64,000 bases of DNA from Podarcis liolepis (Eukaryota), in the NCBI GenBank assembly GCA_965112155.1, contig OZ218111.1, one strand, 5' to 3'. Below, one piece after another: positions 3,616 through 52,203 of the stretch (its first letter is position 1; the number at the start of each line of letters is the position of its first letter). Made by a program: the position numbers and the translations under genes. A model generated the notes under the pieces. That model worked only from the letters and a program-made list of their open reading frames with translations. It did not search any database and was not told the origin of the DNA.

Positions 3616-5170
3616 GACGCCTCGCTGGCCCAGACTGGATTTCATTGGCCAGTTAGGCATTGGACTGGACGTTAGCACTTCCCCCCACTGGTATCCAGGG
3701 CAGACAGGATGTGGCCCAGCACCAGGAGGCTGCCAGGATCCAGAGACTCATTATTTATTTGTCTGCTCCTAAAAGACAGTATGGCACCAAAGGCCCGGCC
3801 AGACCAGGCTGGCCTGGCATGGTGACGCCTCCTGAGCAAAGGCTCCACAACACCCCTTGCAGTTGGGTGCTAGATGCTGGAGGTGACTGGCTGTGCTGTC
3901 AGGATGGGATGCTGTGGCAACAGGTGCAGCAGCAAAGATCTTGGCTCAGTCCCGCCCCCTCAGCTTTCATGAAAGGAGATCTCTACGTTCGCACCCTGGA
4001 GGCTCCGTTTCACAGCTCCTTCAAGAGGGAGGCAGACTCGATGTAGCAAATACTGGAAGGACATTACAACTTGTGAGCTTCCTGGAGTTCAGAACAAGTT
4101 TTTAGGAAACAAAACCAAAATAAAATGTTTTTTAAAGTGTTTGGCTCTCGAGTTGTGCTTTGGGCCTGGCTTCTCGTGGTCCAGATCTCAGGAAGGGAAC
4201 GTGGGGGCGGGGGTAGTTCTGTGTGGGTGTGCACAATCCTCTAGATCTGCAAAGCCAGAGCAGAAAGGTCATGGAGGACGTGTGACCAGAGGGAGCCACT
4301 TGACCCCTCTCAAATTCTTGAGACTCACCCTCTCTCCATGGGCATAGCCAAGGGGGGCAGCTGCCCCCCAATCAATACAATTCAATAAATACACATAGCA
4401 AACAAAGGTTCTGTCCCCCCCCCAACAAAAATTCTGGCTATCCCCATGCCCCTCTCCCTGCTTAATTTCCAAAATGAAAAGTGCATGAGTGCCATTGCCT
4501 TATCAGGAAGACCTTCTTGAGTGTCAATGTCCCTGCTGGGAATGGATCCAGAGCAACTTTGGCTGGCAATTTCCCTTCGCCCCTCCGGATTCAAGTTTGC
4601 AGTGGAAGGATTCAAAATGCAAAGGCATGCTGGACACTTCATGCTTTTTTCAGGGCAAAATGCTAGTTTTCAGCCCAGAACAGCCATTTCAAACTGCATG
4701 GGGAAGGGGAACCCCTCTGCTTCTTTTTGCTCCCCTTCTCTCTGTCCCAAGAAAATGGTGGCCAGGAGGAGGTAGGGATTGGGGTGGGGTGGGGTGGGAG
4801 AACAAGCAAGACAGTGACAGAGTGTGTCTACTGCTGTCTGTACAGCCAGGTGGTTTAAAATCTCTCTCCAGTGGTTTTTAACAATTTGTCAAGCGGGTGC
4901 CGGCATTCCCACTTTACAGGTGGAAAAACTTACTGTGCTGCGATTTGCCCAAGCCATTCTGCCCAGTGTGGGGGTTCAGCACTGCCACTCCCTTCCCGCC
5001 TCTAGCCATTATGGCTCAATATGAGGGAATCCCAAATGACACCCTGTAACCCCGAGCAGTGCATGGGATGTTACCTATTATTAATCAAATTTATATATTG
5101 CTTCATACCTGGGGGTCTCAGGGCGGTTCACTTGAGTAACTGGCTAATTACCAAAGGTTAAAATAAAAAA

Positions 5171-5289
5171 GTGTGCATGCACACGAAAGCTCATACCAAG
5201 AACTAACTTAAGTTGGTCTTTAAGGTGCTACTGGAAGGAATTTTTTTATTTTGACTATGGCAGACCAACACGGCTACCTATCTGTAACT
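5171..5289 (+). mobile_element. Penelope-like element terminal-repeat fragment; second copy at about 53174-53235
   Basis: gtgtgcatgcacacgaaagctcatacc...gttggtct.taaggtgctac motif, present twice in the window. Confidence 0.55.
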
Positions 5290-8200
5290 GTTACCAAAGG
5301 TTAGGTTTACTTGGGGTTAGGGGAGAGAGATGTGGGAAGGATATCTCCCTGGACGCTTTCCTTCCCCCCAGGTACAGCTGTTAAGGAGGGCCTTGCTCTG
5401 GCTGCAGGCACAGAGGGCACCTGCCAAGACTGCAGCCCTTGCTGGGGATTTCAGGCACCAGTTCCCTCCCCTCTTGGCAGCGCCTGCCTCTAGGGCACCT
5501 CGGGTTGTCATGGGGACCAGCATCACCAAAGCTCAGGCAACTCCCCAGGAAGGGACAGAGGCAGCGCCTGAGAGCTGCTCTCTCTGTCCAGTGGGCATGC
5601 TGGTCACTGCAGAGCCACGTTCCACCTGCAGCACTGATCCGGCACCAGAAAAAGTCTTCCTGGGCATGCTTTGAACAAGCTGAATGGTCTCTAGTGGCTC
5701 CTGGATGGTTGCTTCTTGCTGCACAATGGGACAGTGGATAGAACAGCTGCATTGACCCCAGGATAGGAACCAGAAAAGGCGGCTTCCCTTTGTGAGGGGA
5801 AGTGATCCGTGTCTCATGGGGCAGGCACCAAGGCGGCCAGAACCAGATTGTACCTGGGTTTGTAGAGACCCTGGCCAGAAGGAGAGCAAACTGATGTGGA
5901 CATCAGCTGCGGAGAGGCTTGGGCTGTGATAGGTAGGCTGGTTCCATGTGCTGCGGCTACTTTTTGATGCTTGAGAGGGGAATGGCACCTTTGAGCTCAG
6001 GCATTGTGGGGTGGGTGGCAGCCCCTGAAGGATGGGTGAAGGAGCAAGAGGTCACATGTTGTTTCCTTACCTGTGGTGCAAGGTCTCAAGTGGGGATCAG
6101 GAGGGGTGGCAGGGCAAAGGTAGGGCTTCCCAAGTCGACTGGAGCACCTGTCAAGCAGCCAGCCTCTCATTGCAAGGAGCAGTGCCTGGCAAGCTAGCAG
6201 CTTCTTGGCCTCAAGCCTGCTTCCCCTGCCCCAGTCAGTAGACAGGCAAGAGGACTCATCTCTCCTTGCAAATGTGCTCAAAAGGTGAGAGACACCGCAC
6301 TGCTTTATTCCCTAAACTCCTAGTATAAACAGAAGGCAGGAGCTCTCTCAGTGAAGGGCCAATCCTGCAGGAAGTGTGAAGGGGCACCCCTTACGAAAAA
6401 TCATGCTGGGAGCTCTGTGGGCTTAGGCCACTGGCAGGGAAAGCAGTAAGGGAGTTCTCAGGATGTGCCTCATGGGGTTTTATGCACCTCCAAAAGGAAA
6501 GAATGGAAACTGGGGGTAGAGCAACCGCCTTTGCACATTGAAAGGTCCCAGATTCAATCCCTGGGGGCAGCTCAAGGGGAAAACCAAAAAGGTCAGGTAG
6601 CAGGCAGTGGAAAAGGTAGAACTGCAAAGTCATCTGAATCATTAACTGGAAGTATGACAGGACATAGGCAAGCATGCACAGATCCCACCCTTAAAAGAAA
6701 TATGGCCAGTTAAGAGAAAAAACAAAGCCCTAATTACAAACCTTTCTGAAAGGACTTGTGCCAGCTTTATGAATGATTAATGCAATCTAATTCTGATTGC
6801 GGTCAATGAGAAATGAGGATCTGAGCAGAACTCCTGGAAATGAAGTATGGAGTGGTTATGGCCCAAAACCTTTTGGGGGAAGATACCACCAGGGATTGAG
6901 CCTGGGACCGTCTGTGTGCAAAGCCTGAGCAGTGGTCCTCCATTGCCTTCCTTCTCAGTCAGCTTATTCAGAGCAGAGGAGGTCCCTCTGCAACCCACAT
7001 CTGTGATAGGCAACCGGTAGATAATTCACACTTAAATGCAGTCTTCAGTTTGGCAGCTCCCTCCACAACGTTCAAATAACATAACCAGGAATGAGTCTAA
7101 AGGGATTCTCTATCCAGTTACTTCTTCAGTTTGACCCAATGTTTCATGTCCCAAAATTTCACAATAATGGATTATTTTTTTAATGGACACAATCAATGTT
7201 TTGATTCTATAGAGCAGCATCCAGCAAAGTGTGAGAATCTCTGGTTTAATCACAGAGCTCCCTCCTCCCTTTCTTCTCCCCATGCACCCCCTAAATCTGT
7301 TCCAGAATCCCTGCCCCACTCTGAATGGTATTAGGGGACAACACAGACAGAGGGAGGGGAAGTTCCATTTCACAAACAGGACAATGGAACCACACATAAT
7401 CTCTCTTGAAGAGTCAAACCGCTGCATTGGTAGCTCTGAAGTGACCTTCCATGGAGCCCAAGCCTGAGCAGTGCATACAGAGGTCCTTATCTCCCAGGTG
7501 ACAAGACCACCCTCTTGGCCTTGCTGATGTGGTCCAAAGGAAAGCAAAACATTTGGCACCAGCTTGGCTGCAAGTGTTGCCAGAAGCAAGTGTACGAGGT
7601 GCCATTCATTCTTTGTAGGGTTTACTCCTTTTCTTGTCCTGAAGATATCCCACAAGGCAAGGCAGTGGAGGTTTAGGATCAATGTCTTCCTTCTCCTACG
7701 TAGGCTACCTTCTCAGGTTGATGAGCCACATCTGACCCTCACTCCCTCTACTACAGCATGTGCAGAAACTGCCTCCTGACTGTTGGACCCACTACTGGTC
7801 TCGTCCGCTCAATCTGCTGGACCCTGTCTTCACATGCAGGGAAAGTCCCTAACTCATGGAGGGTTTGAGACCCATCAGTTACCCTCATCAAAAGGTGTAG
7901 CTCTAGACAATGACAAAACCCTGAGTGTTACAAATGCAACCAAGAACACCAGTGACACTATTAGGAAGCCAAATGCAAACTTTTGTTGCCTACAGCTTGG
8001 GGGTTTCCCACAGGGTTAGGGTTCAGCACCTGGTTGGCTACTGTGAAAACAGGATGCTGGCTAGATCCAGTAGGCTCTTCTTACATTCTTACAGTAGATG
8101 AATATTATCTATCCCAGTAAAACCCATACCCAAGAGAAGTGCTCCTGGATTCTTGGCTGTTTGTTCTGTAGAAGCCTGCCCCCCGCCCCCAATATGGGAC

Positions 8201-8614
8201 GCTGCCCAGAAAGTGCTTGCCTGTCTTTCCTGATGTTGAACACAGCAGGTGCCTGGATTCTGAGTGGAGGCCTGCCTTGGCGTAAAAAGCCCCCTGGGCC
8301 TTTCTCCTGAGCTGAAGACCCCGCTGGGGAGGCTCCTGACCACATCGTTTCTCCCCACTACTAGGCCAAACTCTGGCCCCTCCCATTAGCCAGGTCGCTT
8401 CCCTAATGGATCTTCCCTGCCCCCAGCTTGGCAAGGTCCCTGCAGAGGCAAGCCGTTAAGTGCAGCCTGGCCTAATGGCGCAGGGAGGTGCTTGATGGTA
8501 CCCGGTAATGGATGCGGGAGCCAGGCAGCTCTGTGTGGTTTCTTTGCTTTCCCTCCCTAGGAGGAGACAGTCAGAGCTGCCTCAGCCTTCAACACTGCTG
8601 CCGCTGCCGGGAAG

Positions 8615-10296
8615 ATGCTGCTCTTGCCCTGCCTGCTGCTGCTGGCCTTTCTCAGGACAGGTACCTGCATCTGGTCTCCCTTCTCTCCCTTCCCCACCAG
8701 CCCAGTAGCCCCCCAGGAGCTCCAACTTGCCGTGCCAAACCCACACTTTGAAACTGCAGTCTCTATAGTCTCCCAGGGGCTTCTCAGCCCATGTGCAGAT
8801 CTGCTTCGAGCAAGACTCCCGCTCTCAGGGGCTTCAGGGCCATCCTAGAGCTAAGTAAAAGCCCTGTTTGCAGGGTGCCACTTGCTCTGGGGTGTCCCAC
8901 CAGCTGGAGGAAGGAATCAACCTAGGATCCAAGCATGTTGACAAGGAATGATGGGCCTGTGTTTGTGTGCATGACAATTGGAGTGTGTGCATGAATGTGT
9001 TTGAGACAGAGAGTTAAGCTTGTGTTCATAGGCCAGTTTGCCTGCAAGTGCTCTGCTCAGTTTCCCAGTCAGTATGAGGAAAACCTTTCCCAGCTCCTTG
9101 CATCTTCCAACCCAAGGACAACTTCACCAGACAGACTTCTGCGCGTTGCCAATGCAGATCTGTCTGATTGGAACTGGGTACCCTCAAATCCCTTAGCACA
9201 GAACCAGTCACTTTCAGTCTTTAGTGGGTTTGGCTTTACTCTTTATGGGAAACAAATGTCCCTGGACCCTGGGTACTGGTTGTCTGAGGTCTGATCTGGC
9301 TCAGGGCAGGAAGTGGTTCTCCTCTAGCAGAAGTGTCCGCGACTTTGCAGCCTTTTTTATTAGGATACTTTCCCTCGCTGTTCAGCCCGCTTCCACAGGA
9401 CTGCCAACCACTCTATAGCCAGGCGACCGAAGAGACGCTGAAACGGCAGTCCCTGGGCCTGCCTGCCCCCTCCCCGGGGTCCTCCTGTGTGGGCTTTCAG
9501 CAGGGCTGGAGCGGCAGTATCCTCCCCCCTCCCCGCAATTCTCCCGCGAGCCCCGGCAGGGAGGGCAGCCCCCCCCCCGAGCACCCAGCTTGTTCCAATC
9601 GCTTCCTCTTTCCAGCTGGTACCCAAAACGTGCACCTTTGCGAGGGCTACCTGGACCCCGCCGGGCTCCACCACGCCGGCTTCTACTGCCCACGCCTCAC
9701 CGACCCCCCGACCCACGCCTACTGCTGCCTGCCTGCCGCCTCTCGCCGCTTCAAGTCCTGCTGCCCACGGCCCGAATTTGAGAGGCTCCGCGGCAATGCC
9801 TCGGCTTCTGCTCCGCCAGCCGCGCCCCGGTGAGATGCCCTTGTGGGGGGACGGGGGGGCGAGAGGGGTGTTGGGGGTTCCCCTCTTCCTCCCGTCCTTC
9901 CGTCTGAGCCCGCTTTCCCTCCACAGGAGCCCGCTGGGGCCGCTGTTGGGCGTGGGGCTCTACGGCTGCCTCGTCCTGGCCCTCATGACCGTCGACTTCC
10001 TTCACTTCTACCGCCTCCACCAGCGCAGCTTTCACCGCCTCCTCCACCGACGAATCCTCGGGAGGTGCCCCTGCAAGAAACAGGAAGCCGGAAAGAAGGC
10101 ACGCGGGGCGGGCGCGGCGGGAGGTGGAGCAGCTCCGCTCCCGGACCGCCCGGTCTCTTCTCCGCTGGGCGCTCCAAGGGAGGCGCTGCCAGCACGTGGG
10201 TCGGCTAGGGAGCGGCTGTCGCGCTCGCGTGGCGTCACTAGAGCGCGCCATGGAGGAGACGGCGGTGAGTGGGGTGGGCGGTGGGAGCCCAGCTGA
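8615..10296 (+). CDS. Shisa-like (SHISAL1/KIAA1644-type) single-pass membrane protein, about 209 aa, three coding exons
   Basis: Exon 8615-8660 encodes the signal peptide [15 protein letters not shown] (phase 1). Exon 9616-9829 encodes the Cys domain [22 protein letters not shown]...YCC...FKSCC..EF plus an NAS sequon (phase 2). Exon 9927-10296 encodes the TM segment [23 protein letters not shown] and a basic, Pro-rich tail. All splice phases match. The 3' end is the least certain part. Confidence 0.85.
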
Positions 10297-13200
10297 CCCC
10301 CAAACCGAATCGCTCATCCACCCCGCCCCTCTTATCTCCGCAGGTCCCGGAGCTCCGCCGGGAGGGCAACGAGCTCTTCCAGACAGGCCGCTATGAGGAG
10401 GCGCTGGCCGCCTACACCCGGGCCCTCAGCCTCTGCCCTGGGGATGGCGAGGAGCCCGACCCGCACCGCGCTGTCCTCCACCGCAACCGCGCCGCCTGCC
10501 ACCTCAAGCTGGTGAGTGGGGAAGTGGGGAAAGCGGGAGGGTTGCCTGAGTTATGGGAGCCCCCCAAGGGGCAGTGCCAGCCTGCCTACCTGCCGCTCAC
10601 TTCTGCAGGAGGAGAAAAGTTGGACACTCCTGGGGAAATTCTAAGGGATTATTGTCTTTTCTTCTCGTGTCTTTTCTTCTCAAAATTCTCAAATGACGTA
10701 GTACGCATCAGAAGGTAGCAGGCATTGTGTGTGTGTTTTCCCCTAAATGGCCACAGAGCTTCCCTGTGCCCCCAGTGTCAACGTTTCTGTGCATCTCTCA
10801 TTTTAACTGTGCTGAGCCCCTTTAGGTGAACTCCTTTTCACCCTGCTGCTCCTTAGAAGCTGAGGTGCCTTTATGCACAGTCAAGGGGAGCCCTCAGGCC
10901 TGGCTGTCTGGCTGTGACGGACTGAGAAGACAGTGGCCATATAGTGAGAGGCCAGCCTGATGCCTTGCCTCCTCCTTCTCCTCCTGTAACCTGCAGAGAA
11001 TTTAGGATTTGACAGATGTCCCCCAGAAAGGTGGTCAGGGCTGTCATTTTCAGCCTGAGCTCCTCTTGAGTATTTTCTTCTCCCCTCACTCCCCTGCCCC
11101 GCTCCCCCGCTTATATTTCCTTTCACCGATGCCTCTCTGGCATTCTGCTTCTTTTGCAGGAGGACTATGTCCAGGCAGAACTGGACGCTTCTAAAGGTGA
11201 GCTGCAAGGGGTGGGGTGGGGGATTACTCTCCTTCCAAAAGTCTCTTTCTCTGCAGAAGCCTCTTTGCTGCCTCTTAATACTTTCTTGCCTGTTCACAGC
11301 TATAGAAGCTGATGGGCATGACGTGAAGAGCCTCTTCCGGCGCAGCCAAGCCCGGCAGAAACTGGGCCGCTTCGACCAGGCCCTCCTGGACCTGCAGAGG
11401 TGTGTGAGCCTGGAGCCCAAGAACAAGGCCTTCCAGGAGGCTCTGCGCAACCTTGGCAGCAGCATGCATGAGAAGGTAGGAGAAGCATTGGGGGAGTGTG
11501 GGCATTGCCAGGGTAGGCGCCTCCCTTGTGGGGCAGCCTAGCTCTCCACCCAGGAAGGATTCTGGGCTTCAGGTGTGTACTGGGCTTCTGAAGTACGACT
11601 GTGGGGTTTCTCACCAACTGCCTGTTTGCTTCAGATGACAGCCATGTCCCGCACAGACTCCAAAGTGGAGCAGATGTTTAAGTTGCTGCTGGACCCTGAA
11701 GAAAAAGATCTGGACAAGAAACAAAAGGTACCCCTCTAATCAGCAAGCAGGTAGGAGGTGTGATGTGCCCTGATGAAGAGCAATTTTGGGTGTGCTGCAG
11801 CTGTACATATATGGGATGCAGTTGTAGAATTAGGCAGTCTCCAGTTCTGTTTTCTATTTCAAAATGCAAGTTTTGCATTTCCAAATTTGCCTGTAGGCAA
11901 AAGCCAGAGGAAGGGTTTCTGATGCCTGGATCAGGATACCTGAGGGAGGAAGGGAGGAGGACTTTGAGTCATTGTACCGTAACTTCCTTTTCCGTGACTG
12001 ACAAAACCAGAATATATTAGGGTGGTGCTTATTTTAATACGATCAGTCTCAGTCTAGAGTGATTCATTCTGTCTCATGGGGTTTGTATACCGCCCTTCAT
12101 CCAACAATCACAGGGCGGCTCATAACATCAAGTCATCCTAATGTTGATGGGCGTTACAGTGCAGCAGCACCTGGAGGGACTCTGCAGGCTTCCCAGCTCT
12201 GCCCAAGGAGGAGATCCCCACCCCCATGGCTCTTAGAGAAACAAGGACAATGGAATTATTATGGGCCAGAATCTCCAAACCTCTCCAGCTCTAAATTCTG
12301 GGTGTGCCCCTCCAACAGCTGTGTGGCCTGATGGGGAGCGGTTAAAGCGAGCCCCTTTGTCCAGCTAACTGGCTCTTCTCCTGTCCAGGCAGCTCAGAAT
12401 TTGATTGTTTTGGCTCGCGAGGAGCCTGGTGCTGAGAAGATTTTCCAGAACGACGGGGTGCGCCTCCTGCTACAGCTGCTGGATACAGGTCGGGCAGACA
12501 CGGTGCTAGCAGCTGTGCGAACCCTCACTGGCCTTTGCAGTGGGCATCGTTCTCGGGTATGTCCACTTTTTAAGATGAAAGCTTCTTCACTCTTTTTTTT
12601 GGGGGGGGGGGTAACAGGTTCAGTCCATTTACTGACAAGTTATGCATAAAACTCTCTCCAAAACCTGTTGCTTCAAGGGCATGCCACTTCTCCGAGGGTG
12701 TGTGTGCCTGGAACATGTCCCTGACCTTGTACTGCCTCAGGAGGTTAGGGGCGAACCAAGTGGTCTCTTCTGTCCCCCTACAGTACAGAGCCATGGCTTT
12801 CTCTGCCTCTGCACCTTCTTATAGGTTGCCACTCCATCCTCCTGGCAGGCACAGAGTTGAGTTTTCACCCATGTTTCAGGCTGGGGAAGGGGATGGAATC
12901 ACCCCTCCCTCTCTGCTGCTCCAGTGTTGAGAAGAAACCTCAGGCTTCCTATTTGCTGGAGTCTGGCTAACCACCAGTGATTCACCAAGAGTGCTCCCCA
13001 ACAGTTCCTTTTCCAGTGACAAATGGGGTACTGCAGGGCCTGGTGTTGTTCAACTTCTTGGAATGGACACCCTTCAAGTGGTGGACTCTCCTTTATTGGA
13101 GGTTTTAAAGCAGAGTTTGGATGGCCTCCTGTCAGGAATAGTTTAGCTGTGATTCCTGCATTTCAGAGGGTTAAACTGAAAGACGCATTGGGTCCCTTCC

Positions 13201-16200
13201 AACCCTACAATTCTATGATGACTTACCGTGGTGGACAGAGGGCTAGCAAGACTGTTGAATACATTCTGCAAGATAACCTAGATATTCCTCTAGTATAAAA
13301 AACCCCCCTAAACTCTGTCTCCTTGGGTAGGTTTATGGGTCCCCAGAGTTCCTACTGACAAGCCACAGTTGCACTTGTGGAGTTGCCTACTAGGCAGGTA
13401 TCCAGTTCTGCTCTGAGCTATGTGGGGGAGGTAACTGGTTCTTGAGAGACAGGCCTGGATTCCTCCCCAAGTCTCAGTGGATGCTGCCCTTCTTTCAGAC
13501 TGCAGTGATCCTGGCTGAGCTGGGGCCCCAGCGCCTCTTTGCTATCCTAGAGATGGAGGACGAGCAAGTCTCGCTGGCAACCTACAGCCTGCTGCAGGTT
13601 ATGTTTGATGCCCTCAAGGAGGGGCTGCAGAGGGATGTCCGTGGCAAGGAGGAAGCTGTGGTCTTGGGTGAGTCTCCTGGGTGCCTCCCTGCTGGGCTCA
13701 GCATCCACTTTGTGTTGTGCCAAGCTCATCTTCGTGCTGATGCCTTGGGTGGAGCTGGGCTGCGAATGCTGGCCTGGAGAGAGGAGGCTCAGACCTCCTC
13801 AACTCTGATTCTGCTCCTGTAGATACATCCAAAGAGCTGAAATTGCTCCTCAAGCAGCTGCTGGAAGCCCTGACCCGGGAGAGCATTTCCTCCTATGGCC
13901 GGGACAGCATCCTCAACCTGCTGATCAGTGTGGTGCCCAGGAAGTCGCTGAAGGACCCCAACAACTGCCTGACCCTCTGGGTCATTGACCAGGGTACGTC
14001 TAGCCCATTCCTGAGCCCCTCCTCTTCCTGGCCTGGGTCCCTCGCCAGCGCCAGTGAGCATGTCTGTCCTCACTAGGTCTCAAGCAGATCCTGGAGGTGG
14101 GGGGCACAGTGAGCCACAGCCCCGGGGGCCTGCGGGTGACAGAGAACACCCTCATGAGCGCAGCCGTCCTCCTCAGCAAGCTCTATGGGGACCTGAAGTG
14201 CGACGGGGAGCGGGAGAATTTCCACCGGCTCTGCGAGGACTATGTCAGGTAGGCCTGTGACTGACTCGGGGGCTGCCCACTGCTGCTTCTGGTAGGGGGT
14301 GCTGGGAAGGCATGGGGGGCCAATGAAGTGGTGGGGAGTGATGCTCAGCGCTTAGTTGCTGACAGACATCGAAAGCGTCATAACAGCCCATCAGCTTGGC
14401 CAGAGACACCCAGTTACTGTAATTCATGTACTGGTTGCTTCAAGACTGGATTACTGTAGTGCGCTCTATATGGGGCTTCCCTTGCATCTGATCTGGAAGC
14501 TGAAGCTAGCGCAGAATGCTGCAGCTTGATTGCTGAAAGGAGCAAAAACTTGTCAGCATATAGCACCCATGCTCAGAGATCTGTACTGGTTGCTGATTTG
14601 CTACCGAGACAAGTTCAAAAGGTTACTATTAGTATGCAAAGCCCTTAATAATTTACCTGTGAGACTGCCTTAACCCAGATACGCTCACTCAACCACTTCC
14701 ATCTGCAGAATTGGCACTGTTCCAAGTGCCATATAATACCCGTTCTGCATTTATAATAAATGGATCTTCTAGTGTGGTGATATCAGGCAGGCACCTTCAT
14801 TCTACTCTTTTTGACGTCTACTGAAAGCATTTTTGTGTAGGCAAGCCTACCCATATATTTAAAACGCTGGTGTGTTTTTAGTTTATTGCTGGTTTTAATT
14901 TTTAGAATGTGTTGTTTGTACTAATAATCTTACTGTTTCTTTTTATAAACCACTTTGAGGTTTTCTACAATCACGTGATATATAGATGTTATGAAATAAA
15001 TACATAATAGTGGGTGGGAGGAGGACTTTTGCTGCCAGAAGGTGCCGTTGGTTGATCTCGGATTTCTTTCTGGTGCAGAGTTTGGGGTTTCAGCTTTGGA
15101 ATGTCTGTGGTAGCTTCCTGGCTGCTCCTGACGGGCCGCCTTTCCTTCACCTCCCAGGGGCTGGTTCCAGGACCATGGCGTCCCTGGGAAATTGCGGGCC
15201 ATCCAGACGGCCTCCTGTCTCCTGCAAGGCCCCTCCGAGGCTGGGAACAGGGTGCTGGAGCTGAGTGGCATCATGGAGAGCATTCTGGCCTTGTGCGCCT
15301 CGTCACAGGAGGCCGACCAGCTTGTGGCCGTGGAGGCCCTGATCCATGCTGCCGACAAGGCCAAGCGGGCCACCTTCATCACTGCCAATGGGGTGACACT
15401 ACTGAAGGAGATCTACAAGCACAGCGAGCGCGACAGCATTCGCATCCGGGCCCTGGTGGTGAGCAAGAGGCAGCAGATCTTGGAGAAGGAGGGAGACATT
15501 TTCTGGCTGCAGTGGGACCCCACACTGTTTCTCTTTTTTATAAAAAAAAATTATTAAATTTTCCAACATACATTTATAGTATCCAATCTAAATTTATCAC
15601 ATATTTTCTCTTTTAGACTTCCTTCAACCTCTCTGACAATCATCCATTATTCAAATTTTTAAATACGCATTTCCTAATTTTATATTGCATTTTATAAACC
15701 TTCACACACTTAGTTTTCATCAATACAATAGTCCTCTATCATTTACAGAACTTCTTGAAATCCCACTAGCATTATTTGCTCATCACATACACATTTCAGA
15801 TAGTCTGAAAATTTTCCCCAGTCTTCAATGAACTTTTGATCTCGTATATATCTGATCTTTCCTGTTAGTTTGTCCGGTTCAGCATACTCCATCAGTTTCA
15901 TTCTCCATTCTTCGAGCGTCGGCAGTTGTTCCTGTTTCCATTTTGGGGCAAATAATATTCTCGCTGCTGTTGCTGCATATTGGAAAAGTTTACAGTCCAT
16001 TCTATTTATTTCATTTCCTACTATTCCTAGAAGAAAAGCCTCTGGTTTCTTAACAAACGTATATTTCAACATCTTTTTCATCTCATGATATATCATTTCC
16101 CAGAAGCCCTTCACCTTCTTACAATCCCACCACATATGATAAAATGTTCCTTCTTTTTCTTTACATTTCCAACACCTATTACATGTTTTATACATTTTTG

Positions 16201-19200
16201 CCAGTTTTACAGGTGTGATGTACCATCTATAAATCATTTTCATAACATTTTCCTTTAACGCAGTACATGCCGTAAATTTTATATTTTCATTCCACAGTTT
16301 TATCCAATCATTAAACTGTATATTATAACCCAAATCTCTGGCCCGAACACTGTTCCTCTTCCATCTTCCCAGACTGAAGGAAGTTCTGGGGTCAGGTGGC
16401 AACTGCGGCACATCACGGTTTCTCTTTCCAGGGCCTCTGCAAATTGGGCTCGGCGGGGGGCACAGATTTCAGCATGAAGCAGTTTGCGGAAGGCTCTACC
16501 CTGAAGCTGGCCAAGCAGTGCAGAAAGTGAGTGAGCGCTGCTTTCTTCCCCCATGTCCCAGGCGCTTTAGCCTCTTCTGTGCCACGTGACTGCCTTCCCC
16601 TTTAGAAGGAGGTCAGGCTGCCTGTTCCTTTCTCAAAATCTTGGGAGCTGGTGGGAGCTGACGGATGACAAGAATGAGTCCCTCCGGCAGCTGCACAACA
16701 GACCATGCCCCACTGAAGCCTGGGGTGGTGGGGCTTCCTATGCTCCTTGCCCACTAGGGTCTCAGCTGGTAGAGGCACTATCATGATTCTCCTTCTCCTG
16801 CTTCCAGGTGGCTGTGCAATGAGGCCATTGATGCCGGCACCCGCTACTGGGCAGCTGAGGGACTGGCCTTCCTCTCCTTGGATGCGGACGTTAAAGAGGA
16901 GCTCCTGGAGGACAAGGCTGCCCTGCAGGCTCTCTTCTGGCTGGCCAGGGTGAGGTCCTCTTCCAAGAGGGAGGGTAAAGTGGATGAGTGGGTGGGGTAC
17001 CTGTGGGAGAAATGGACACCTGGGCATGTCTAGAGGCTCTTTTTGCCTCTGCCTTGTTTATGTTGAATTTCCCTTGCTTAGGAATAGCAACCCAGCTGTA
17101 GTATACGGTACCCAGTAATTTTTAGAATTGTAGAGTTGGAAGAGGTCCCAAGGGTCATCTAGTCCAACCCCTGCAGTGCAGGAATTACAGCTAAAAATCC
17201 CTGACAGATGACCATGCAGCCTCTGCTAAAAAAAACTTTCAGTGAAGCGGGAGTCCACCACCTTCTGAGAGAGTCTGTTCCATTGTCAAACAACTCTTAC
17301 CATCAGAAGGTTCTTCCTAATGTTTAGTGGGAATCTTCTTTCTTGTCATTTGAATCCATTGGTTTGGGTTCCTACCACTGGAGCAGCAGAAACCCACCTT
17401 GCTCTGTCTTCTATGTGATAGCCCTTCATATATTTGAAGATTTAAGATGTAAAATGCTGTTCTGTAGCAAAATTTCCCGAGTCTCAGTGAAGTGTCTCTA
17501 CTGTACCACTTCAGATCCATAACTGGAGCTTCACATGATGAAATTCTTCCCCCACTTCAACAGCACCCAAGAAGAAAAGGATTCCTCCACATAGGAAATG
17601 AGTGTTTCGGAGAACCCTTTGCCACAACACACCTCTTCTCTGTGTGTGAATATCTTGTTTGTGCGGAAGCATTTTGATTATATCTCCCCACAGTGGGCTC
17701 TGTACAGCCCAGAGACATGCTGGTTGCCTCCAGGAGGACCAGCCCAGGGGGGTAGAGTTGGCCCACCCAGCCCCTTTAGGGCTTTCAAATCCAGACCAGG
17801 CTCTGGAGCAGGGGTTGGCAACTTCTGGCCTGTGAGCCAAACTTGGTGCACCATTTTGGGTAAGCCATGCATGGCCACCTGATGTTAGGTGGGGGGGGTA
17901 AGGGGGGGCCTTCAAAGGAAGACTTGAGAGCTTAAAGGGGATTGCTCCTTTGCTGAGGCAAGGCTTGTTCCCAGCTTCTCATCAGCCTTGCTCAAGTTGG
18001 CGGGAAAGGGGATTCCATTCAGGAAAAACTGCTCCTCCTAGCACTGCTCTTTCAGTCTCCAGTTTCCAGAGGTTTCAAGAGCAGGGCAGGGCAGCTCCCA
18101 AAAAGCCTTTCACACAGCACCATGCTGTGCTTTGAAGTCGGGAAACTGAGGCTTTAAAGTGCAGCATCACCATTACATCTGGTGATTGACAGGTGGGTGG
18201 CCCCACCTACCTGCCCAACTCAGTCCGTCAGGGGTGCAGAGATGTTAAGAGATCACTTCTGATCAGCTTCTGGTGTTCTATGGCTGGGCTGTCTTGTTCT
18301 GCATTAGCTGACGCTTCTGAATAGTACTCAAGGGCGCGCACACTTTACTTTGCCAGGCAGTAGCCAGTGCACAAGTGGTGGCCCTTGGTCCCAAAGAATC
18401 ATGAAGGTCCCGACTGACCACCTTCTTCTGCTTCTTTGTCTTTGTTCCTGCCACCGATCTGCTCCCCTCAGTCAGAGAACCGAAGCGTCCTCTTTGCAGT
18501 GGCCTCCACGCTGGTGAATTGCACCAGCAGCTACGACCAAGAGGAGCCTGACCCCCAGATGGTGGAGCTGGCGAAGTATGCCAAGCAACACATCCCTGAG
18601 AAGCACCCAAAGGTGAGAGAGGAGTGTCATGAGGGGGCCAGTGGAAGCCTTCTAGCAGGCTGGGGGGGTGTGGCTGGGCCTGGCTCCTCTGCCCTCCTCA
18701 GGAATGTTTTTTTGGATAATGGGGAGTTGAGGTTGGAGTGGGAAGCTTTTAGAAATTTGTGATGAAAAGACCACAATTGTGTGAGATGCCGGTGGATGGA
18801 GCAAGGAGGGTGAGAGGAGGAGTAGGAGGTGGATAATAGGCATCCCACGGCCTATTCTCATCCTCTCTCTCCATCTCTTCCTGCCCAGGACAAGCCAGAG
18901 TTTGTGCGCCAACGTGTGAGGAAGCTGCTGGCCGCCGGTGTGGTGTCAGCGCTCACCTGCATGGTGAAGAGTGAAAGCCCCTCCTTGAGCCCCGCCTGCC
19001 GGGAGCTGATCTCCAGGTGAGGCCAGCGGCCACAGGCCTTGACCCCTGTAGAGCTTTCATAGAAGGGAGGGGACCCAAAGGGTCATCATGCCCAACCCCA
19101 TGCAATGCGGGTATTGCTGTTCACAGGCAAGTCCTCCAGACCTGCTACACAGAGGAGACATGCTGGCCTTCTTACCTGTGGGTTTCTGCTTAGCCAAAGA

Positions 19201-19259
19201 GCTCAGAAAATTTAGTCGAGCCAAGATGACGCCTTCCTGTAATCTCAAATTGCTGTGTG

Positions 19260-19294
<35 letters not shown>

Positions 19295-20739
19295 TGGAGA
19301 GAGTGTTCTGGGTCCCACATTCAGTGCCTACTATTGTGTGCTTCAGGGTGTTCCTGGCTGTCGTGGAAGACCCTGAGGACCGAGGGGCTGTGGTGGCTGC
19401 TGGAGGCGGGAAGGTGAGCCTCACACATGCCTACACACCCTCTCCTGTTTGGCTTTGCCCTGCATCAGTACTGGGGCATCAAGGCTTTTCACAGTCAAGC
19501 AGAATATGGATTTTATTCCACCACTAGGCACTCATCCCTCTGGCCCTGGAAGGCACTGAAATAGGGCAGATGAAGGCTGCGCAGGCCCTGGCTAAGATTA
19601 CCATCACCACCGCCCCCGAGATGGCTTTTCCGGGAGAACGGGTGAGTGTGGAGTGAGGGCAGCATCACAGCAAGGGGTCGGGTTCCCCTTTCCTCTCCCC
19701 ACCGCCCTGAGCCTTTTCTCTCTCCTCCTGCAGATCTACGAGGTGGTCCGGCCCCTGGTGGGCCTCCTGCACTTGAACCGCAGTGCCCTGCAGAATTTTG
19801 AAGGGCTGATGGCTCTCACCAACCTGGCGGGGACCAGTGAGCGGCTCCGGTAAGGCTGGACAGGCAGGCAGGCAGGCAGGCTGGCCATCTCCCTGGGTCC
19901 CAGCCCTGTCCTCTGGAAGGGTTACATTCCTTGGAGGCAGGGGCCATTACCTTCTGCCTCCTCCTGCAGGCAGAAGATTGTGAAGGAGAAGGCCGTGCCC
20001 ATGATCGAGGGCTACATGTTTGAGGAGCACGAAATGATCCGCTTGGCAGCCACTGAGTGCATGTGCAACATGGCGCTGAGCCCAGAGGTGAGCAGGGGTA
20101 CTGGGCCACCTGGCTGTGCTGGGGCCCCGGGAGGTTTATCTCCACTCACATCTCTCTTTTGGGCAGGTCGGGGAGCTGTTCCTGGTGGAGGGCAGTGACC
20201 GGCTCAAGCTGCTGGTCCTGTACAGCGGGGAGGACGACGAGAGGCTCCAGCGGGCAGCTTCAGGGACACTGGCCGTCCTGACCTCGTTGCTGCCCCAGAT
20301 CTGCTCCCGCATCCCTCAAGTGGTGAGTACCGCCTGGAGGGTGGGCTGAGCCCAGCAGCTGCCCACTGGGCATGGCAGACCTTTGGAGGGTCTCCAGGAA
20401 GTGGGTGGATGCCGGGTTTCCTTCCTGCTTGCTAACTGACCTCTCACTCTCTTTCCCCAGACGACTCACTGGCTGGAGATCCTGCAGGCCCTGCTCCTCA
20501 GCCCTGCCACCGAGCTCCAGCACCGCGGGGTGGTGGTAGTGAGGAACATGGTGGCTGCTGACAAGGAGGTGGCCGAGAAGCTGATGGAGAGCGAGACGAT
20601 GGAGATCCTGTCTGTTATGGCCAAGGCCAAGGACAAGCCCCAGATTGCCCAAGTGGCCCAGGAGTGCCTGGCGCAGGCTGTGGCTTATGGCTTGATCAAG
20701 CCCAACCCTCCTGCAGTTGCCGAGAAGGAGGGGGACTGA
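10250..20739 (+). CDS. UNC45A: Protein unc-45 homolog A (TPR + central + UCS myosin chaperone), 20 coding exons
   Basis: Exons 10250-10264, 10344-10511, 11160-11196, 11300-11475, 11635-11727, 12389-12556, 13499-13667, 13823-13993, 14077-14248, 15158-15458, 16432-16526, 16808-16949, 18472-18612, 18889-19016, 19347-19413, 19528-19641, 19734-19849, 19970-20087, 20167-20322, 20461-20739. Motifs [36 protein letters not shown] and [14 protein letters not shown]. Synteny with MAN2A2/RCCD1 favours the A paralogue. Confidence 0.97.
14400..15005 (+). mobile_element. Degenerate L2/CR1-clade LINE 3' fragment in UNC45A intron 9
   Basis: Decayed RT C-terminal motif (ctggattactgt..gcgctctatatggggcttccc, LDYC..LY.GLP) followed by an AT-rich tail. 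Confidence 0.6.
15536..16346 (-). mobile_element. 5'-truncated L1-clade LINE (ORF2 C-terminus + 3' UTR) in UNC45A intron 10
   Basis: AT-rich block with an open frame of about 200 codons containing the CWKC-x8-HMWWDC knuckle. Flanked by a 14-bp near-direct repeat: acactgtttctctt (15522-15535) and acactgttcctctt (16347-16360). Confidence 0.88.
17124..17440 (-). mobile_element. CR1 3'-end fragment
   Basis: agaattgtagagttggaag...gtcatctagtccaacccc motif. Similar copies lie at about 51920 and, in the opposite orientation, at about 13050-13215. Confidence 0.7.
19254..19290. repeat. (TG)n microsatellite in a UNC45A intron
   Basis: TG dinucleotide run seen directly in the sequence. Confidence 0.9.
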
Positions 20740-50668: not shown

Positions 50669-52203
50669 TCACTCAGGTAGCCCTCTGGCTTTAAACAGCA
50701 GCCACAATTTTTCCTCCAACACCGGGTTTGTCCCACGCAAGCCCGTCACTACCTTCGAAGCCCAGTGGAAGTACTCCTGGACTCGGTTCTCGGACCAGCC
50801 TGGCCAAAGAGAGACAAACCCACAAGTCAGAAATTCACACTTGCATCCATACACAAGCCTGACTACTGCTTTGCCACACACTGTGACAGCTGGACTTGCT
50901 TTGCTACTTTAAGGAGGGGATCAGAGCCGCTCAAGAAGTGGGGTGGAGACTGTGTGATCTCCCTGACCTGTTCCACAACAGCATTGATGTCTACTAGCTA
51001 AACCTGTTCTCATAGGTGCTTGACTCTTCAGTTGACAGCAGTGCTCACCAGAGACTAATTTGGGAAAAGCTACATGACTTTGCTATTTGAACTCATTTTT
51101 GTGTGTGGCCGGAACTGTGTACAGCATAGGAAGGTTTTGTATTATGTTTTGTCCAAGCTGAATATTTTAAAATGCTGTACTAGATCCTGCCCCCACCAGA
51201 TTATAGATACAGAGCAGAAGTCTTAATAAATTAGTTATTGAGCTCCTGTTCTGTAACACAGAAAAGGACAGCAAGGATCCTGCCATCCCATGCCAGCTAC
51301 TCCCCCTCCTTTCAGAAGGGCTACCCAAGGTGGCTGGCCAGAGACGGACCTCGGGGTGTGCAGCGGTTGAGATCTCGCAGGTTGTACAGCTTGTCTGCCA
51401 GTTTCACCAGCTTGGCCTCTCGGCTGCTCTGAGCAGCATGTTCAATCTGCAGCCGCTTGCGCTCCTTCTTGACCAAAGTCTTGTCATCCGTCACTTCCTC
51501 CACAATTCGCCTCACTTCCTCCCCGAAGTGCTCCTCGATCTCTGAGAAGGTGGTGTCTGTGTCTTCAACAGTGTCATGGAGGAGAGCAGCCTGGAAATAG
51601 GAGGTTCTTGATGCTCAGTTTCTAAAGGACTTTGATCCCCAACACCCTGCCCTCTTCTTTGAAGTACTTTTCTGCAGGAATGCAAAGCTATTCACACATG
51701 CTTAATGGCACACTTATTATGAGTTTTCCAGGCTAAGCCTTGCATCGCTGTGCTTGGAAGCTTTAAACTAGGACAGGGAAAATATCAGGGAGGGAGAGGG
51801 GGTGCCCTTACCTGTAGTATTGCAATTTCCGTTATTCCAGCTTCCTGTGCCAGTATCTGGGCTACACCTGTGGGGGGGGGTTAGACAGAGGGGCAGTACT
51901 TAGCTTCTAAAAGGAATAAGAGAATTGTAGAAATGGAAGGGATCACGAGGGCCATCTAGTCCAACCCCCTGCAATGCAGGAATCTCAACTAATGCATCCA
52001 CGACAGATGATGAACTGGAAGTGTAGCCCCCGTCCCCACTGCATTGCGGAAGAAAGCGCACACTGCACATGCTCAGGAGACTGCTCACCGATGGGGTGGT
52101 TGATGTACGGCGTGCCTTCCGGGTCTTTGCGGCGCTGCGCCGCGTGCTTCCGTGCCGCGAAGTCCGCGGCGTCCAGCAGGCGCACCGCGTCCGGGGCACT
52201 CAT
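50669..52203 (-). CDS. HDDC3: HD domain-containing protein 3 / MESH1 (ppGpp hydrolase-like, NADPH phosphatase), 4 exons
   Basis: Minus-strand exons 52203-52089 ([26 protein letters not shown]), 51867-51812, 51590-51350 ([32 protein letters not shown]) and 50799-50669 ([14 protein letters not shown]). Confidence 0.97.

Follow-up and report, generated by a model that had tools for sequence, protein, structure and literature searches.

A Shisa-like membrane protein gene directly upstream of UNC45A in the lizard Podarcis liolepis, a probable orthologue of an unnamed vertebrate paralogue of SHISAL1

A stretch of 64,000 nucleotides (nt) from the lizard Podarcis liolepis (GenBank assembly GCA_965112155.1, contig OZ218111.1), here called the window, was analysed with respect to a Shisa-like gene that a first-pass annotation had proposed between MAN2A2 and UNC45A. 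The presence of a gene for a Shisa-like single-pass membrane protein in this interval was confirmed; it is a real and intact gene, and its exons had been assembled correctly. The stretch very probably carries the lizard orthologue of a vertebrate SHISAL1 paralogue that is ancient and unnamed and is located head-to-tail directly upstream of UNC45A. The gene is already known, but from computational prediction only and under wrong names; what is new here is the lizard copy.

Three exons on the plus strand (8615-8660, 9616-9829 and 9927-10296) join in phase to give 46+214+367 nt, i.e. 209 codons. The proposed product of approximately 209 amino acids (aa), with a signal peptide, a six-cysteine domain, a sequon, a transmembrane (TM) helix and a basic tail, was exact in its coordinates and phases. 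The elements of the gene are as follows (positions are those of the window; ^ marks a splice site):

8615-8660, plus strand: coding part of exon 1, with the ATG at 8615 and a hydrophobic signal peptide (15 codons plus one base); donor CAG^GTACCT, GT at 8661.
8661-9615, plus strand: intron 1, 955 nt, GT-AG, phase 1; no junction read; carries 15 of the 21 differences from a close relative.
9616-9829, plus strand: exon 2, with the six-cysteine Shisa_N domain and the sequon; acceptor ...TTTCCAG^ behind a polypyrimidine tract, donor CCG^GTGAGA.
9795-9803, plus strand: N-A-S sequon at the conserved N-x-S position of the family; N60 and S62 nearly invariant in the alignment.
9830-9926, plus strand: intron 2, 97 nt, GT-AG, phase 2; read-through meets a TGA at 9831-9833.
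9927-10296, plus strand: exon 3, with the TM helix, a conserved juxtamembrane stretch and a basic low-complexity tail; acceptor ...CCTCCACAG^, stop codon TGA at 10294-10296.
9946-10002, plus strand: TM helix, 19 aa, Kyte-Doolittle hydropathy 1.98; G-L-Y-G and D-F-L-H-F kept across the family.

When the region is read without splicing, a stop codon closes each exon piece a few codons into the following intron. Kyte-Doolittle hydropathy reaches 2.17 in the exon 1 leader and the value listed above in residues 7-25 of exon 3, while exon 2 contains no hydrophobic stretch. By hydropathy, the protein has the signal peptide and the single TM helix of the six-cysteine Shisa-like subgroup, which would suggest a type-I topology. 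The 70-residue piece encoded by exon 2 carries six cysteines spaced C-x15-C-x11-CC-x10-CC in addition to the NAS sequon, and all of these cysteines (C8, C24, C36, C37, C48 and C49) are located in nearly invariant alignment columns. In exon 3 the TM stretch is followed by a tail rich in His, Arg and Lys. This exon could be aligned with newt, turtle and bird proteins up to approximately ...RRILGRC, and conservation ends at about position 10098; at the other end, the leader and some 15 codons 5' of the ATG could be aligned with the N-termini of snake orthologues. The coding end, consisting of the tail past ~10098 and a stop within UNC45A intron 1, is a prediction from the genomic frame. Neither a PPxY motif nor a PDZ ligand is present in the predicted tail. 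The first-pass annotation also placed a 56-nt intron in the 5' untranslated region (8505-8560). Its terminal dinucleotides fit, but no read or contig supported it: the two contigs covering the site are unspliced and collinear with the genome. Such a length is also very short for a vertebrate intron, and this element was discarded as unsupported.

Membership of the Shisa superfamily could be established by searching the window exons one by one. Residues 7-53 of exon 2 scored 24.2 bits against Pfam Shisa_N (PF13908), above the curated cutoff of 22 (E 3.6e-5), and a word search of exon 2 against 5.8e9 sequences returned about 60 bird and turtle proteins with 55-60% identity and E-values down to 8e-17. 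Proteins of python, turtle, newt and vole matched exon 2 and exon 3 separately and in the correct frames by tblastn, with E-values of 6e-20 to 2e-7 for the python, turtle and newt queries. Conservation between lizard and amphibians is highest in the TM and juxtamembrane region (56% over 50 residues, E 2.5e-15 by tblastn). In the alignment, exons 2 and 3 are collinear with the bird and turtle proteins and retain nearly all columns with at least 90% conservation, including all six cysteines, the GF(Y)CPRLTDP core, the NxS sequon, G-L-Y-G and D-F-L-H-F. The family profile also matched the solved cysteine-rich domain of Shisa-3 (5M0W, E 4e-4). With its C..C..CC..CC pattern, and not eight cysteines, the protein belongs to the Shisa-like subgroup, which is defined by six conserved cysteines (PMC8621455).

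Searching the family profile against 1.84e9 representatives yielded 107 matches arranged in tiers. The nearest tier consisted of birds, turtles, newts (Pleurodeles, Lissotriton), frogs (Ascaphus, Ranitomeya) and a caecilian, together with Latimeria, sturgeon, paddlefish, reedfish and teleosts (Paramormyrops, Osmerus, Hypomesus); true SHISAL1 formed the next tier. Bichir is likewise among the predicted holders of an orthologue. Other named members are Pleurodeles XP_069077545.1, Latimeria XP_014340380.1 and Acipenser XP_058851396.1, as well as proteins of Gopherus, Chrysemys, Taeniopygia and Serinus. The NCBI pipeline labels the proteins of the nearest tier 'shisa-like-1', 'shisa-like-1a' or 'uncharacterized'. 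When the word search was repeated with the window and a snake-like open reading frame (ORF) as seeds, it added an annotated protein of the olive python Liasis olivaceus (171 aa) and four unlabelled snake-like ORFs. All five have the window's leader, the residues upstream of the ATG, the domain and the R^SPL junction in common with it. This junction, which corresponds to the intron 2 site, is used in the annotated protein of the python and also in proteins of turtles and birds.

The gene had been taken for one that this lineage kept and that mammals may have lost. Neither view could be maintained: predicted orthologues range from teleosts to birds, python, amphibians and mammals, the last represented in the nearest tier by Microtus ochrogaster (XP_026640037.1), Alexandromys, Lemmus, gray whale and fin whale. 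Its description as a hidden gene applies to lizards at most, and no lizard member of the UNC45A-linked group was found in the protein collections searched; overall the description does not apply, the olive python orthologue being annotated. Two unlabelled mammal-type sequences (P0143, P0147) have an out-of-frame TM reading in common (GPGP, then APSA…); one of the two also lacks both the RL of CPRL and one cysteine. The frame-shifted TM region of such sequences may point to pseudogenisation in some mammals.

The UNC45A-linked shisa-like-1/1a proteins resemble the window's product in architecture, in the six-cysteine spacing, in the NxS sequon, in the R^(S/N)PL junction and in the G-L-Y-G...D-F-L-H-F motif, with an identity of 51-60% over exon 2 and 52-70% over the TM part. 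They differ from it in that the squamate ectodomain evolves faster. Exon structure varies as well. In the lizard a single exon encodes the TM and tail parts and has no GT at the equivalent position, whereas the TM exon of turtles is separate: as a comparison of P0003, P0014 and P0034 with P0004, P0023 and P0037 shows, some turtle isoforms skip exactly the 28-residue TM segment, and the TM helix is therefore encoded by a separate, phase-preserving exon in turtles. The predicted TM-less turtle isoforms are possibly secreted. In snakes, unlike in the lizard, a linker of some 35 aa separates the leader from the Shisa domain. In the snake copies (P0305, P0302-P0304 and P0106) leader, linker and domain are located in one uninterrupted ORF, so intron 1 was maybe lost or is read through in snakes. 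Four of the ORFs end in ...R*, and reading the window into intron 2 gives the same end. The lizard tail is longer than that of its relatives and runs into exon 1 of UNC45A.

To place the gene relative to SHISAL1, a maximum-likelihood tree of 58 rows (LG+C20+F+G4) was constructed, in which exon 2 and exon 3 of the window were entered as two separate rows. SHISAL1 formed a 99/99 clade with both window pieces outside it. A 100/97 split separated SHISAL1, the cyclostome proteins and a second chondrichthyan group from the UNC45A-linked type and the tunicates; both window pieces fell on the latter side, closest to turtles, and their highest identities and nearest tree neighbours were among the bird, turtle, snake, amphibian, fish and mammal proteins of the UNC45A-linked type. 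Forcing the window pieces into SHISAL1 was rejected by the approximately unbiased (AU) test (p 4.9e-33, difference in log-likelihood 81.6). The proposal that the gene is a SHISAL1 paralogue is borne out by these results and by the many species that carry both genes. Monophyly of the UNC45A-linked group including the window pieces was not rejected (AU p 0.12), while rooting on tunicates gives it no positive support; a union of the UNC45A-linked type with the second chondrichthyan group was not rejected either (p 0.07). When rooted on the long tunicate branches the UNC45A-linked type appears paraphyletic, and the order of the old duplications is therefore not settled. The second SHISAL1-type gene, found besides true SHISAL1 in rays and a shark (P0080, P0174, P0179 and P0097), groups with SHISAL1 and the cyclostome proteins (100/97), apart from the UNC45A-linked type. 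This gene may be a third paralogue of old origin, or else an orthologue that the tree misplaces.

A separate true SHISAL1 exists in squamates, birds, turtles, amphibians, coelacanth and ray-finned fish. Both genes are present on different chromosomes in canary, the antbird Pithys, painted turtle, Latimeria, Ascaphus, Pleurodeles, Geotrypetes, reedfish, paddlefish, Paramormyrops and olive python. Bird proteins of the present type are encoded on chromosomes of about 20-25 Mb, and bird SHISAL1 on far larger ones. In Hypomesus transpacificus the contigs given for the UNC45A-linked type and for true SHISAL1 have the same length (17,823,525 bp), and the two genes are therefore probably on one chromosome.

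SHISAL1 is the closest named family, with the six-cysteine domain, the CPRL(S/T)D core, an NxT/S sequon, the (L/I)GV..YG motif in the TM segment and a similar size. It differs in its neighbour, which is PRR5 and not UNC45A: chicken SHISAL1 is located on chromosome 1 (NC_006088) beside PRR5 (bioRxiv 10.1101/2021.12.29.474483), and the window carries MAN2A2, UNC45A and HDDC3 instead. SHISAL2A and SHISAL2B (FAM159A/B) are also Shisa-like proteins in which six cysteines are conserved, and they are viewed as transmembrane adaptors (PMC8621455), but they are less closely related than SHISAL1 and the tunicate homologues, and neither SHISAL2A nor SHISAL2B was among the named matches of the family profile search at E<=1e-3. 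Shisa1-9 have the Pfam family Shisa_N and the single-TM adaptor logic in common with the lizard protein; they differ in having eight cysteines, against six here, and the window's tail is without their proline-rich PPxY and PDZ ligand.

Two other origins of the open frames were weighed against this assignment. The GC content of 0.70 at 9501-10500 yields many long ORFs, on both strands here, and chance frames in such a CpG island might mimic a Shisa domain. This reading was rejected as having practically no probability, given E-values to real proteins of 1e-16 to 1e-20 for exon 2 and 1e-7 to 1e-15 for exon 3, in the correct order, frame and splice phase, and a Pfam score that exceeds the cutoff. 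Hardly any weight can be given, too, to the view that the lizard gene is the SHISAL1 (KIAA1644) orthologue itself, moved to a new place in this lineage. The motif pattern given in the first-pass annotation fits both genes, and the relatives bear the name 'shisa-like-1' in the databases, but orthology to SHISAL1 was rejected by the tree, the AU test and the coexistence of SHISAL1 in the same species. Exon 2 reaches no more than about 40-45% identity with SHISAL1 proteins, while a turtle SHISAL1 query matched many lizard and snake SHISAL1 proteins at 90-93% identity; a separate true SHISAL1 was found in Varanus, Zootoca, Pogona, Pseudonaja and Liasis, the last of which carries both genes.

The order of genes in the window is MAN2A2, with its stop at about 3613, the Shisa-like gene, UNC45A from 10250 to about 20.7 kb and, on the minus strand at about 51.5-52.1 kb, HDDC3. 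The HDDC3-type exons (…INHPIG…, about 51500-52110) are some 30 kb past the end of UNC45A, outside the MAN2A2-UNC45A interval. The Shisa-like gene lies directly upstream of UNC45A on the same strand, head-to-tail. A fin-whale gene model, KAB0400935.1 (993 aa), consists of a Shisa-like domain and TM segment joined to UNC45A; it belongs to the same 90% cluster as the gray-whale Shisa-like protein and is collinear on the window, matching 9633-9788 and 9937-10014 and then 15 UNC45A segments from 10335 to 20706. The adjacency is therefore common to lizard and whale and predates a split within the amniotes; this old linkage was observed in the lizard window and in the fused fin-whale model, and for birds, turtles and fish the support is indirect, from the chromosomes that carry the bird proteins.

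Constraint on the coding exons was assessed with contigs of a within-genus relative, about 1.2% divergent over 8300-10096. In this region the relative differs from the window by 18 substitutions and three indels. The exons contain one change in 430 bp, the synonymous TTT>TTC at 10032, compared with 20 in 1367 bp of flanks and introns (one-sided Fisher p 0.024). Within a single high-depth contig the ratio is 1/384 in exons against 6/224 in intron 2 and the tail of intron 1 (p 0.012), with two substitutions and two indels in intron 2. The constraint therefore tracks the Shisa coding exons and not the UNC45A leader, which supports coding constraint on these exons.

Transcription was followed in four RNA runs of the close relative, two of them raw (X23 and X24, about 12% of each being read) and two older ones taken as contigs; the tissues of the runs are not stated. 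The exon 2-3 region is certainly transcribed in one sample, X1, as an alternative UNC45A leader that arises in the CpG island (GC 0.70). The elements involved are:

9489-10098, plus strand: alternative UNC45A 5' leader exon (X1 contig), covering exon 2, intron 2 in unspliced form and exon 3 over its first 172 nt.
10099-10343, plus strand: GC-AG intron between this leader and UNC45A exon 2; its junction continues the Shisa-like reading frame of exon 3.
10250-10264, plus strand: coding part of the canonical UNC45A exon 1, ATG and four codons; inside the Shisa-like exon-3 ORF, in another frame.
10344-10512, plus strand: UNC45A exon 2 (start of the TPR part), read depth of about 36x in runs X23 and X24 and loose ends past 10512; also matched by whale UNC45A (tblastn).

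The joint 10096>10342 has three ambiguous bases, and only the +2 placement gives a GC-AG intron at the known exon 2 acceptor, with the borders AAG^GCACGC … CTCCGCAG^G. This leader skips the canonical ATG exon, and the X1 sample is without a contig over canonical exon 1. Runs X23 and X24 use only canonical UNC45A exon 1, and their reads show ...GGAGGAGACGGC ahead of 10343. An ATG at about 9796, whose frame stays open across intron 2, is in frame with the leader junction as well. Low-depth, unspliced contig coverage of 8300-9499 was found in the two older runs. The Shisa-like exon-3 ORF crosses the start codon and exon 1 of UNC45A and stops within UNC45A intron 1, and its tail is conserved in no relative.

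Several of the results weigh against a functional lizard orthologue. No spliced read or contig for the junctions 8660^9616 and 9829^9927 was found in the four runs, and the three exons had zero depth in X23 and X24, while UNC45A exon 2 in the same runs showed the coverage given above and the canonical exon 1-exon 2 junction. The X1 contig (3167 nt) contains 9489-10098 with intron 2 retained, then jumps to 10344 and continues through UNC45A. No AATAAA or ATTAAA occurs on the plus strand at 5162-11000, past the MAN2A2 3' region, so the 3' end of the Shisa-like mRNA is undefined. The squamate branches of the tree are long (1.24 for window exon 2, 1.77 for a snake ORF), which could reflect relaxed constraint, and an AlphaFold2 model of exon 2 built from 24 sequences was of low confidence (predicted local distance difference test 55, predicted template-modelling score 0.33). 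The first-pass annotation had held that the gene would have to be abandoned if no tissue gave junction reads; the junctions it named were absent from these four runs, which does not extend to every tissue. Expression of a spliced mRNA in this species is predicted from the genomic sequence.

These points would fit a gene that was functional in the squamate ancestor and now gives no Shisa-like mRNA, exons 2-3 being merely the CpG-island leader of UNC45A and the intact frame a leftover. Such a relic is favoured by the missing junctions and depth, by the X1 contig with unspliced intron 2 joined to UNC45A exon 2, by a stop without a following poly(A) signal and by the long squamate branches, but it is considered unlikely. 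The six cysteines and nearly all family-invariant residues are kept at a separation of about 280 million years from turtles and birds, the python protein and the four snake-like sequences are intact, and within the leader itself the changes fall in intron 2 and the intron 1 tail and spare the exons apart from the single synonymous one. The unstated tissues and the fraction of the raw runs that was read also speak against drawing this conclusion from the missing reads. Still less probable, and little more than a speculation, is that the Shisa-like gene and UNC45A are kept together through shared transcription, with a spliced read-through encoding a fusion protein. The GC-AG splice from 10098 to UNC45A exon 2 keeps the Shisa-like frame, so that translation of a read-through transcript with all introns removed would start with the signal peptide and continue through the Shisa domain, the TM helix and some 30 juxtamembrane residues into almost the whole of UNC45A, a fusion of the same kind as the fin-whale gene model. 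If true, the product would be a membrane-anchored myosin/Hsp90 co-chaperone, whose UCS part would be placed, in a topologically sensible way, in the cytosol.

Taken as the orthologue of the UNC45A-linked genes, the lizard gene would encode a type-I single-pass glycoprotein with a cleavable signal peptide and a luminal or extracellular six-cysteine domain bearing one N-glycan, followed by the TM helix with its strongly conserved juxtamembrane segment and a short, basic, poorly conserved cytoplasmic tail; topology and glycosylation are those expected from the architecture. Six-cysteine Shisa-like proteins are considered to be transmembrane adaptors with a regulatory role towards other membrane proteins (PMC8621455, citing Pei and Grishin 2012). 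By analogy with the Shisa and Shisa-like families, the protein may act as a small transmembrane adaptor, in which the disulfide-bonded ectodomain and the TM/juxtamembrane region would bind another membrane protein and tune its maturation, trafficking or activity. As the predicted tail has neither PPxY nor PDZ ligand, the protein is not expected to use the WW-domain ligase route or the PDZ route of other Shisa proteins.

In the literature searched on SHISAL1/2A/2B, shisal1a/b, KIAA1644 and STMC6, no study of the UNC45A-linked paralogue was found, and no function is reported there for any member of its group. An open-access census of the Shisa family gives no second Shisa-like-1 gene for chicken, human or mouse (PMC10531659), and the database labels of the group are names of SHISAL1 or of the zebrafish SHISAL1 duplicates. 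Because of this gap and the shared or misapplied names, orthology tables and expression studies can confuse both genes; lizard annotations seem to miss the gene. Besides SHISAL1 itself, vertebrates carry another gene of this type in tight linkage with UNC45A. Its overlap and splicing relation with UNC45A are the only unusual aspect: the last exon overlaps the CpG-island promoter, the alternative leader and exon 1 of UNC45A in a compact arrangement of overlapping same-strand genes, and this overlap may explain the conserved linkage.

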